In this document: in pieces, positions 9,272 through 41,830 of the stretch | Numbering within the stretch: the stretch's first letter is position 1 | Layout: each line of letters begins with the position of its first letter | From: Podarcis filfolensis | Lineage: Eukaryota | NCBI GenBank assembly: GCA_964270895.1 | Contig: OZ185436.1 | Length of the DNA stretch: 64,000 nucleotides | Reading direction: 5' to 3' (one strand) | Notes under the pieces: model-generated | The model's database searches: none | What the model was told of the DNA's origin: nothing | What the model saw: the letters and a program-made list of their open reading frames with translations, nothing else | Made by a program: the position numbers and the translations under genes

Positions 9272-9862
9272 GGCCACATTCACACCATACATCTCTAGCA
9301 CCATGCCACCACTTTAAACATCATGGTGTCTCCCAAATAATTATGGGAAGGTATAGTTTGCTACAGAGTTGCTAAGAGACCCCTATTCCTCTCCGAGAGC
9401 TATTCACAGGGAATTTTGGGAATTGTAGCTCTGTGAGGAAAATAGGGGTCTCCTAGCAACTCTCCTTCATGGATCACTGCCTTGTCGTAGCAGAGGGGCT
9501 TGAATAACTCAGAGAAGCTATGAGCTATGCTGCGCAGGGCCACCCAAGATGGACAGGTCATAGTGGAGAGTTTTGACTAAACGTGATCCACCTGGACCAG
9601 GAACCGGCAAGCTAATCCAGTATCCCTGCCAAGAAAACTCCATGGAAGCTACTAACATGAGTTTGACCAAACTGCGGGAGGCAGTGGAAGACAGGAGTGC
9701 CTGGCGTGCTCTGGTCCATGGGGTCAGACACGACTAAATGACTAAACAACAAAGCAACTCTCCACACTCTTAACAAACAACACCTCCCAAAATCCTTTCA
9801 GGAAAACAGTGACTGTTCAAAGTGGGATCATAGTGCTTTATATGTATGGTGTCAGTGTGGCC
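9272..9862. mobile_element. PIF/Harbinger-like MITE interrupted by a BovB-derived insert
   Basis: 21-bp TIRs GGCCACATTCACACCATACAT / ATGTATGGTGTCAGTGTGGCC (19/21) and 3-bp TTT duplication. About 293 bp once the insert and one TSD copy are removed. Confidence 0.8.
9466..9752 (+). mobile_element. Short bipartite BovB (RTE)-derived element: 5' region fused to 3' end
   Basis: 9466-9646 resembles the BovB 5' region (gatcactgccttgtcgt…gccacccaagatggacaggtcatagtggagag…tccagtatccctgccaagaaaactccatgga). 9647-9752 is the BovB 3' end (…ctggtccatggggtc…gacacgactaaatgactaaacaac). 11-bp TSD AGCAACTCTCC at 9455-9465 and 9753-9763. Confidence 0.85.
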
Positions 9863-14593: not shown

Positions 14594-14774
14594 NNNNNNN
14601 NNNNNNNNNNNNNNNNNNNNNNNNNNNNNNNNNNNNNNNNNNNNNNNNNNNNNNNNNNNNNNNNNNNNNNNNNNNNNNNNNNNNNNNNNNNNNNNNNNNN
14701 NNNNNNNNNNNNNNNNNNNNNNNNNNNNNNNNNNNNNNNNNNNNNNNNNNNNNNNNNNNNNNNNNNNNNNNNNN
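14594..14774. other. Assembly gap (181 N)
   Basis: Run of N read directly. Confidence 1.
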
Positions 14775-26429: not shown

Positions 26430-26895
26430 GGAAAAAAGCATGTTCTTTTATCTGTCCTAAATCTTCCAATGTTCAGCTTCATTGGTTGGCCACGAGTTCG
26501 ATTGTCAGGAGAGAGGGAGAAAAACTTTTCTCTACCCACTTTCTCCATGCCATGCATGATTTTATAATCATACATTATATCGTCTCTTGCATACCTTTTC
26601 TCCAAACTTTGTTGTTTAGTCGTTTAGTCGTGTCCGACTCTTCGTGACCCCATGGACCAGTCCCAAATGTTGTAACCTTGCCTGATAGGGGAGTTGCTCC
26701 AGCACCTTAACCACTTGGGTTGCCATTTTCTGAACGTTTTTGAACTCTACAACATCCCTTTTGGGTGGAGGTGACTAGAAAGGTACACAGTATTCCAAAT
26801 GTGCTCATACCATAGATTTGCATTACGGTATTGGCAGCTTTATTTTCAGTTGCGTTCTTAATGATCCCTAGCATGGGATTTGCTTTTCTTTCAAC
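26430..26895 (-). mobile_element. CR1 LINE RT C-terminal fragment, interrupted by a BovB tail
   Basis: Minus translation LEKR…DYKIMHGMEKVGREKFFSLS…RTRG.PMKL…RFRTDKR and upstream KANPMLGII; frameshifted. Confidence 0.85.
26609..26660 (-). mobile_element. 52-bp BovB extreme 3' end
   Basis: Reverse complement ctggtccatggggtcacgaagagtcggacacgactaaacgactaaacaacaa, the same terminus as the element at 9647-9752. Confidence 0.9.
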
Positions 26896-39560: not shown

Positions 39561-41654
39561 TATTTTGAGGGATTTGGGGGAGGTGACGCGGGGTGGCATG
39601 GAAAACACCTAGGTGCTTCCAGCCTTTTAATACTTCCAAACAAGAACCTGCAATTTTATAGTGCCAACTTGTTCTGCCTAGGATGATTTATTGATGCAAT
39701 AGGCTTTGGTGTATTTCACTTGAGAATATATTAGCCAACAGTGTGAGGTGTCAGCTTTCCTTAAAACAGAGCAGTAAACCTTTCTCTGCTCCAGGTGACA
39801 CACAAACTCATTGCTTTGCAGTAAACAGAGCTCAAAAGGAATAATAATAACAATAACAGCCTGATTAAAATTACTCTACCCCACCCTCAAGCAGGAAAGA
39901 TACGTGTGACCATAGCACCCTTGAAACAGCATTTCAGTATTGTGTTGTGTTTGTTGCCAGCCTTCATCAGTACATTTTTTTCCTTCTTAAAAAATCAAAT
40001 CAAAGGAGGAGTCCACAGTGCACATCTCATAGTACGGGTGTTGGGATGCTGACACTTTAGTGAACCCAACATGCAGTCAGAACCTGGATTTCTGAGCAGG
40101 CATCTGCAAGCAAAATTTGATCATCAGTCTCCAGAGTGATAGGAGCTACAGTAAAGCTAGGCATTATGAGGGGGCACTGCTGCCACCAACCCACATCTCC
40201 CCCTATGTTTCTCCCAGTAAATATCTAATAAAAGAAACATGTGTCTTGATGCCATCATACTCAAGAGTTTTTCTACTTCCAGCAGAGAGCAACCAATTAA
40301 TTGGAATGGGGAAAGAGAAACCCTGAACACTAAGATGGCACCGGGGGATACTTTTTAATATCAGTTTGTTCCTGTGCCCATTTTCTACGTTTCAGTCCAC
40401 TATTCATGCTTCTCTCCCACATACTATTGATTCCTTCCTCCCTGGGTAGCCTGCGAAGTAAGCCAGAACAGCAGGCTCTGCCTGTCTTAAACAACAATCT
40501 CAGAAAGCCTTGTGGTTGATGCATAGGCCCAGAAAGATTCTAGCAATGTCGTTTCCTCTGCCCTTCAAATGACTGTCCAGCATGTCTGCTTGCCCTGAAA
40601 ACTCACTCTGAATTAAGAAGCAGGAAGTGTTTTGAGGAGGATTGTGATACTGTGTGCCATTGCAACAAACTCAGTCTTGTACACTGACTTGTGCCTTCCT
40701 ACTTGGCCTGATATCATATACCTGTGCATCACATAGTCTTTTTTCATGACTGATAGGTGCCCATTTTAAAGGCTGAGCTGGGAGAATTGGGAGAGAGTAA
40801 ATTACATAAGCCTTTCTTGACTTTGTCCTAATGCTTCTAAAATATTTCCAGATCAATTTCCCATCTCTTCAATGCTGACTCTTGGTTGATCACCTTGTTT
40901 TGGTGTCACAACTCCTTCAGCCCAATTCTGAGATCCTTAAATCTCTGGTGGGGCTCCAACAATGCAAGCACTCGGGTCTCTATAGAGACCTTCAGTGTAA
41001 ATCTCAGAATGTGGAAAGTAAATGTTACTTTTGAAGCTGGAGAAAAAGCAACATTGAACTGACCTTCCATGCAAGTAGCTCTTTAGTCTCCAGGTCTGAA
41101 AGCTTTTGGTGAATTGGGGGTATCATTGGTGGTAGGGGGTCTGTGCCATTAATTGCTCTAAACACCATTCTGGCCAAGCACTTAAGGTACAGAATGGAGT
41201 GTTGGATAACTAAATTTTATTGTATTTTGCATTCAAAGTGCTGAAAAGCATTTTTCTTCACCCCCAACCAACATGCATAAGGGGAACCAAGAGTGGTTTC
41301 AGTGTAGACTGGTGTTGATTCTCTAGTATTTACTTTCACTAACATGTAGGACTTGATACAGAAGCTCAGCCCCACTGAGGACAACATTTAGATGAGATAG
41401 CATTACCCACCTTTGTTCACATCTGTGCCCCCGTGGCAATTAAATGAGATGCTGTCCAGCTTAAGATCAGAAGTGACACTTGTGTGAGGAGCACTGAATA
41501 TTCTCCTGCCTTCCTTCCCTATCTCCCCACGCACTTTTATGACGATCAGAGTCAGCCTTGGGGGAAAGAACCCTAGAAGAGCTAAATCGATTCTCACAGT
41601 GACCCATCAGATACCAAAAGAAGGTTGGGTGACAGCCAGAATGTGTGGTAGTAA

Positions 41655-41830
41655 GACTGCACTATACACATAAAGTCTTATCAAACCAATTTATAGAGTC
41701 ATGGCTTCCCCCAAAGCATCCTGTGATCAGTAGTTTGTTAAGGGTCCTGAGAGTTGTTGGGAGACTGTTATTCCTCTCTTACAATTTCTAGAATTCCCTG
41801 CAAAAATGGGTTGGTTGTTAAGCCACAATA
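41655..41830. mobile_element. Degraded Harbinger-like MITE copy
   Basis: 'agagtcatggcttcccccaaagcatcctg…gtagtttgttaagggt…gagagttg' matches the interior of the 9272 element. Confidence 0.55.

Follow-up and report, generated by a model that had tools for sequence, protein, structure and literature searches.

The window, that is, the whole 64-kb stretch of Podarcis filfolensis DNA that was analysed, contains a 287-bp mini-BovB (9466-9752), in which 181 nt of BovB 5′ sequence are joined to 106 nt of BovB 3′ end. The element was inserted as a single unit by target-primed reverse transcription, with a target-site duplication (TSD) of 9-11 bp that starts at T/A (here and below, a slash outside brackets marks a join in a sequence). 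That it is a bipartite BovB derivative which arrived as one unit is, in our judgement, close to certain. By analogy with ruminant Bov-A and the bipartite elements of the RTE clade, we lean towards the view that it represents a lineage that is non-autonomous and moves with BovB proteins supplied in trans, with the deletion present in the RNA that was copied. The initial annotation had proposed 181 + 106 nt, a junction at 9646/9647 and an 11-bp TSD, all of which proved exact to the base; its description of a bipartite BovB derivative under one TSD is borne out, with a true BovB 5′ end and a BovB 3′ end in place. The features are as follows.

9272-9862, no strand assigned: host palindromic MITE-like repeat; 49-nt terminal arms, 80% complementary; inner hairpin at 9365-9463
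9455-9465, plus strand: 5′ copy of the TSD, AGCAACTCTCC; begins with A, the preceding base being T at 9454
9463-9590, plus strand: candidate HDV-like ribozyme layout, from by-eye pairing on the P. muralis sequence
9463-9468/9492-9497 (P1), 9479-9481/9489-9491 (P3) and 9470-9477/9583-9590 (P2), plus strand: candidate ribozyme helices
9466-9646, plus strand: 5′ module, BovB nt ~4-184; extreme 5′ end, whole 5′UTR, ORF ATG and the next two bases
9642-9737, plus strand: residual mini-ORF, MEATNMSLTKLREAVEDRSAWRALVHGVRHD and stop; BovB start codon (9642-9644) fused in frame to the BovB ORF end
9645-9648, plus strand: deletion junction 9646/9647; 2-nt microhomology GA at 9645-9646
9647-9752, plus strand: 3′ module, last ~116 nt of BovB; 35 codons, stop, short 3′UTR, (CAA)2 tail at 9747-9752
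9753-9763, plus strand: 3′ copy of the TSD, the same perfect 11-bp repeat
41640-41820, minus strand: diverged paralog of the host repeat ('empty site'), continuous across the insertion point

The 287-bp unit is an insertion, since the host-repeat paralog reads straight through the insertion point. A perfect 11-bp direct repeat, AGCAACTCTCC, flanks it. Such a repeat is not rare by itself (six 11-mers recur at a spacing of 250-350 bp in the window); we identify this one as the TSD because it abuts both BovB termini exactly and because the host-repeat paralog is uninterrupted. The final two bases of the TSD (CC) are identical to the opening bases of full-length BovB (CCCTTCATGG...), and the true TSD is therefore 9-11 bp long, with the copy beginning at BovB nt 2-4. 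The window element opens (CC)TTCATGGATCACTGCCTTG..., and full-length P. muralis copies open CCCTTCATGGATCACTGCCTTG... (also printed as CCCTTCATGGATCACTGCC...). In P. muralis, Bov-B LINE insertions are marked by (CAA)n tails and by duplications whose first base, A, follows a T (PMC13295347). The T/A start of the TSD fits the 'TA' insertion signature of that study; the published signature, 'Tn-TA', also has an upstream T-run, which the window insertion site lacks. The (CAA)n tail of the window element is likewise of the Bov-B_PMu type and not the (ACCTTT)n of the Sauria SINE.

The inner hairpin of the host repeat has arms of 38 nt and gave weak miRNA-precursor-like Rfam matches (mir-448, E = 7.7e-4, 30.8 bits versus a gathering score of 90), which are taken as hairpin mimicry. 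Elsewhere in the window, positions 14594-14774 are 181 N in a row (an assembly gap or masked).

The two halves were compared with full-length (~3.2 kb) P. muralis Bov-B copies with their flanks, taken from the supplement of PMC13295347 (Nakatsuka & Ohshima, 2026); comparisons with P. muralis sequences, including the mismatch counts, were done by eye. Counted in this way, the 5′ module is identical to one printed full-length copy at 170 of 181 positions, with 11 mismatches and no indel. Where full-length P. muralis BovB reads ...AAAACTCCATGGA and then CAAAGACAACAGG..., the window has AGCTACTAACATGAG instead, which gives the junction ...AAAACTCCATGGA/AGCTACTAACATGAG... (CCATGGA/AGCTAC) between 9646 and 9647. 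Hand translation of the printed P. muralis copies establishes that the ATG within CCATGGA is the first ATG of the long BovB ORF. The frame from this ATG reads MDKDNRHIKVMTLEDEPLRSEGVQHATGEE...KVQCCKEKYCIGTWNVRTMNLGK and enters the start of the endonuclease domain (...CIGTWNVRTMNLGK); an in-frame TAG lies ~70 nt upstream of it. Since CCATGGA holds the initiator ATG, the 181-nt half amounts to the complete 5′UTR, the ATG and GA.

The 3′ module is collinear, from AGCTAC to the (CAA)n tail, with the BovB 3′ ends on two ENA contigs, L003 and L004 (alignment A2: L003, L004 and window 26595-26700). In full-length copies AGCTACTAACATGAG lies ~116 nt from the 3′ end, after ...GTTCT(C/T)GA. At the two breakpoints full-length BovB thus reads ...CCATGGA/CAAAG on the 5′ side and ...GTTCTCGA/AGCTAC on the 3′ side, and the ~2.9 kb removed by the junction codes for endonuclease and reverse transcriptase. 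The junction is in frame with the last ~36 codons of the BovB ORF, and a fusion ORF of 31 codons is all that remains of that ORF in the window element. Its translation begins MEATNMSLTKLREAVEDRSAWRALVHGV...; further on, 10 bp are missing between 9726 and 9727, a deletion private to this copy, and the shifted frame closes with ...RHD and a stop. The only other BovB-like sequence within the 64 kb is a 52-bp 3′ tail at 26609-26660 (minus strand), a severely 5′-truncated copy (CTGGTCCATGGGGTCACGAAGAGTCGGACACGACTAAACGACTAAACAACAA) lying inside another interspersed repeat; it retains the 10 bp deleted from the mini-BovB.

A SINE in the strict sense (the SINEBase definition) has a Pol III head derived from tRNA, 5S or 7SL RNA. 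ARAGORN found no tRNA head in the window element, and Rfam gave no match of it to a ribozyme, tRNA, 5S or 7SL RNA at E up to 10. It is therefore a headless bipartite LINE derivative and not a SINE in this sense, and 'SINE-like', the label used in the initial annotation, was a loose one. What was found is a TSD-flanked unit with the parental 5′ end, the parental 3′ end and tail, and without the ORF, as in the bipartite elements known from RTE and BovB. Elements that lack an ORF and consist of a LINE's 5′ and 3′ parts alone typify the RTE clade, with RTESINE1/2, WALLSI3, MAR4_MD and RTE-N2_Lch as examples (Kojima, 2018, PMC5786205). The window element is thus a headless bipartite non-autonomous RTE/BovB LINE, a well-described class. 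RTE-N2_Lch (5′ 214 bp + 3′ 70 bp; PMC5786205), RTESINE1/2, WALLSI3 and MAR4_MD resemble it in having the extreme 5′ and 3′ ends without an ORF or a Pol III head. They differ in belonging to other RTE lineages and other hosts, and in that their multi-copy status is established, whereas the window junction is known from one locus.

Bov-A itself is an internally deleted Bov-B, and in a squamate, the python, SINE-1_Pmo consists of BovB 5′UTR and 3′UTR parts that align with BOVA2 (Kojima, 2018, PMC5786205). As this class has been described and SINE-1_Pmo, like the window element, is a squamate element with BovB 5′ and 3′ parts, elements of this kind are well known, and squamates already offer a parallel to Bov-A. 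Of the novelty suggested in the initial annotation, the structural parallel to Bov-A therefore stands, but the class is catalogued and the python element is a squamate precedent. In the literature searched (Repbase and Dfam lie outside it) we found no description of a lacertid bipartite BovB family or of a BovB ribozyme. The Sauria SINE, likewise non-autonomous and found in squamates, owes its mobilisation to a BovB-like 3′ end; it differs from the window element in its tRNA-related head, its (ACCTTT)n tail and its duplications starting with T. Membership of the Sauria SINE was ruled out by the (CAA)2 tail, a TSD that starts with A and the absence of a tRNA head.

HDV-like ribozymes at the 5′ ends of LINEs (RTE, R2, L1Tc) form a nested double pseudoknot of helices P1, P1.1, P2, P3 and P4 and cleave at the first base of the element. 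A candidate layout of this kind can be drawn on the P. muralis sequence: P1 pairs CCCTTC (nt 1-6) with GAAGGG, P3 pairs GCC with GGC around a 7-nt loop, P1.1 pairs GC with GC, P2 pairs TGGATCAC with GTGATCCA, and P4 is a long stem-loop domain. All of the candidate helices fall within the retained 181 nt. In the window copy candidate P2 is paired at 8 of 8 positions and closes the MFE fold, and in the squamate-type mini-BovB on contig L005 (see below) it shows one compensatory change, from A-U to G-C; candidate P1 and P3 are decayed in the window copy. In MFE folding, the 5′ module could not be told apart from shuffled sequences (z-score -1.25). Bipartite RTE elements usually retain the extreme 5′ end, possibly owing to the 5′ self-cleaving ribozyme that some RTEs have (PMC5786205), and such a putative ribozyme is a plausible reason for the retention of the extreme 5′ end here.

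For comparison with other BovB derivatives, an exhaustive HMMER search was run with the 54-aa junction-spanning ORF as query, and matching ENA metagenome contigs with host DNA were retrieved. One of them, L008, carries a classical Bov-A unit of ruminant type, ...GAGAATTCCATGGAC/AGAGGAGCCTGG... (in longer form /AGAGGAGCCTGGCAGG...; also ...TTCCATGGAC/AGAGGAGCCTGGCAGGCTACAGTCCACGGG...), which adjoins a BovB 3′ end reading ...AACTCAATGGACATGAGTTTGAGCAAGCTC...GTGATGGACAGGCAAGCCTGG.... Two unrelated papers on ruminants print motifs and a primer that agree with its junction. The unit uses the same start codon as the lizard element and is joined in frame 14 codons further 3′. The ruminant Bov-A junction is ATGGAC/AG(A/G)GGAGCCTGG, and about 22 codons of the ORF end are kept, compared with ~36 in the window. 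The coincidence of 5′ breakpoints, which the initial annotation had put forward, is thus real, the start-codon motif being the same on L008, and the different 3′ partner claimed alongside it corresponds to the 14-codon displacement. Bov-A units, as they occur in Bov-A2 and Bov-tA, accordingly resemble the window element in being internally deleted BovB with the same start-codon motif on the 5′ side, an in-frame ORF end and a (CAA)n-type tail, and differ from it in the 3′ partner and in the number of codons kept (~22 versus 36). In Bov-A, only the distal part of the 5′UTR is known to be retained, the extreme 5′ end being absent; the unit is found either as a dimer or following a tRNA-derived head, at a copy number of the order of 10^5. 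Membership of ruminant Bov-A was ruled out for the window element, whose junction is ATGGA/AGCTAC with ~36 codons kept: the 5′ side is the same, the 3′ side differs.

Start-codon junctions were also seen on three further contigs. The tRNA-headed ruminant-type copy on L006 reads ...TTCATGGAC/TCAATGGACGTGAGT... and is joined at the codon homologous to the lizard 3′ partner (lizard GAA-GCT-ACT-AAC-ATG, ruminant GAC-TCA-ATG-GAC-ATG); the junction on L009 is similar, with a few extra bases. A ruminant-like BovB mini on L007, ...CCCCATGAAC/ATGAACTTGAGC..., has the start codon joined 3-4 codons further 3′. Ruminant genomes, from which these contigs derive, hold hundreds of thousands of BovB-derived copies, and because they are so numerous we treat L006, L007 and L009 as selected examples and not as evidence of a hotspot. 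The recurrence is moreover partly one of ascertainment, since a protein search finds only in-frame junctions that resemble the query. Of the recurrent fusion hotspot suggested in the initial annotation, what stands is that start-codon junctions recur; this can equally be read as retention of the 5′UTR and start codon with deletion of the ORF, and the 'hotspot' is better described as the 5′UTR/start-codon boundary. A search of viral contigs with the ruminant BovB tail pattern gave 0 matches, and a full-text literature search with the ruminant BovB parental strings returned nothing.

The ruminant-type contigs show some further features. The tRNA-headed SINE copies at L006:300-670 and L009:709-1028 have a BovB 3′ segment longer than that of classical Bov-A (ATGGAC/TCAATGGACGTG...) and end in a tail of LINE type, (CTGAT)n. 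Such copies may represent a long-form subfamily or chimeric products of SINE and LINE RNAs, and classical Bov-A could stem from a form like these by loss between two ATGGAC repeats. On L008 (216-530) the Bov-A unit ends in GACTAAAACAACAACAACAA, a squamate-like (CAA)n tail, and the adjacent BovB LINE 3′ end carries (CTGAA)n; an older tail of the squamate kind thus seems to have survived in the SINE part.

A counterpart to the window element is a squamate-type two-ended mini-BovB at L005:205-586 (protein P0079), in which the 5′ end and the first 27 codons of the ORF are joined in frame to the terminal ~116 nt. Its 3′ part starts at exactly the nucleotide used in the window (GA/AGC), again on a GA microhomology, whereas its 5′ part extends 81 nt (27 codons) beyond the ATG. 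With an ORF start of MNRNKRLKD..., it represents a different BovB lineage, at a divergence of about 13% from the window element. In the protein library it is a singleton, and no clear TSD was recognised around it. The window halves are 94-98% identical to full-length lacertid BovB and only ~87% identical to L005, which argues for independent origin at the same 3′ point and not for common descent. L005 was not chosen for its breakpoint, as the search would find any BovB ORF end; the identity of the two 3′ breakpoints is therefore not a product of selection by us and we regard it as suggestive. Should GA microhomology be favoured, however, the last 200 nt offer only about ten sites of this kind, and we rate the coincidence at roughly p = 0.01-0.1. 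A strong hotspot of 5′ truncation at the 3′ breakpoint was considered and rejected. Among 165 occurrences of BovB ORF ends, some 18-20 have their break no more than a few codons upstream of it; an ordinary excess of short copies gives the same fraction, which is hence not counted as evidence.

We speculate that BovB repeatedly spawns one minimal design in unrelated hosts, namely the whole 5′UTR with the initiator ATG, fused in frame to the last 22-36 codons, with a preferred switch point ~116 nt from the 3′ end, although we consider this unlikely on present data. Such a switch point would be common to the window element, the L005 mini and the long-form tRNA-headed copies of the L006 type, the 5′ end would be defined by the ribozyme, and both boundaries would be due not to chance but to some constraint, functional or mechanistic, on the part of the BovB reverse transcriptase.

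[quoted passage not shown] The retained first ~184 nt comprise the complete 5′UTR from the true 5′ terminus and the ATG, and may fold as an HDV-like self-cleaving ribozyme; the retained last ~116 nt, including the (CAA)n tail, would have to be recognised by the BovB reverse transcriptase. The 3′ end would thus supply the recognition site and the retained 5′UTR would define the 5′ end of the element, the deletion having presumably been present already in the RNA that was copied. We favour a propagating non-autonomous lineage because one two-ended mini (P0079/L005) is found among the 29 squamate-type representatives of BovB ORF ends in the protein library and because RTE elements in general behave in this way. 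Against such a lineage we count that a second copy of the junction is missing and that a one-off switch of template would produce microhomology and intact ends just as well. No second copy occurs within the 64-kb window, and libraries of 5.8 billion and 1.84 billion proteins contain no ORF with the window junction. Since squamate-type BovB ORF ends have only about 29 representatives in those libraries, a family would have had to be very abundant to show up. With the junction-spanning ORF as query, a word-indexed protein search turned up 9 ordinary BovB ORF ends, none of which has the junction. The junction pattern had 0 matches in metagenome, prokaryote-genome and viral contigs; the blanks in these collections carry little weight, since control patterns from ordinary lacertid BovB gave either two chance matches in unrelated DNA or none.

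The template switch just mentioned would have happened during integration: after ~116 nt the enzyme would have changed template at the GA microhomology to position ~184, on a full-length BovB RNA or between two BovB RNA fragments, and then run to the 5′ end, leaving this locus as the sole carrier of the junction. We hold this to be possible but doubtful. The microhomology of only 2 nt is in keeping with it, as is the fact that the sequences searched (the 64-kb window, the proteins and contig collections poor in lizard DNA) yielded no further copy of the junction. The rearranged BovB on L003 suggests, in addition, that the BovB enzyme switches template frequently; on this contig a BovB 3′ end in direct orientation is closely preceded by a BovB 3′ segment in inverted orientation (L003:1-125 versus 211-330), an arrangement that resembles twin priming. 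However, every bipartite family begins with such an event and the copies of an amplified family outnumber the founders; the parts retained here are also exactly the two functional ends, with the start codon in frame, although an in-frame join has a 1-in-3 probability by chance. A third possibility is that a full-length BovB was inserted and later lost ~2.9 kb from the genome by microhomology-mediated end joining. The GA microhomology is compatible with this and the window copy bears another small (10-bp) deletion, but full-length copies are rare in P. muralis, at 435 of 52,041 BovB insertions (<1%; PMC13295347), and a single deletion that spares both functional ends and the frame is improbable in its own right; nothing in the sequence calls for such a loss, and we judge this course of events quite improbable. 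Collapse of a full-length BovB by the assembler is hardly credible: BovB is a high-copy repeat, but collapse is expected over long identical sequence and not at a 2-nt microhomology between unrelated parts, and the flanks and TSD are clean.

BovB is a LINE known for horizontal transfer. If the junction in the window is multi-copy, as the preferred reading of a lineage mobilised in trans would have it, lacertids would have their own headless parasite of BovB, and with it a natural experiment on the minimal cis requirements for BovB mobilisation, 184 nt of 5′UTR and 116 nt of 3′ end. A junction confined to this locus would make it one more rearranged LINE insertion. The start-codon junctions of the lizard element, of ruminant Bov-A and of other BovB derivatives, together with the 3′ breakpoint common to an independent squamate mini, may give hints as to where the switch occurs and which parts of the RNA are needed.
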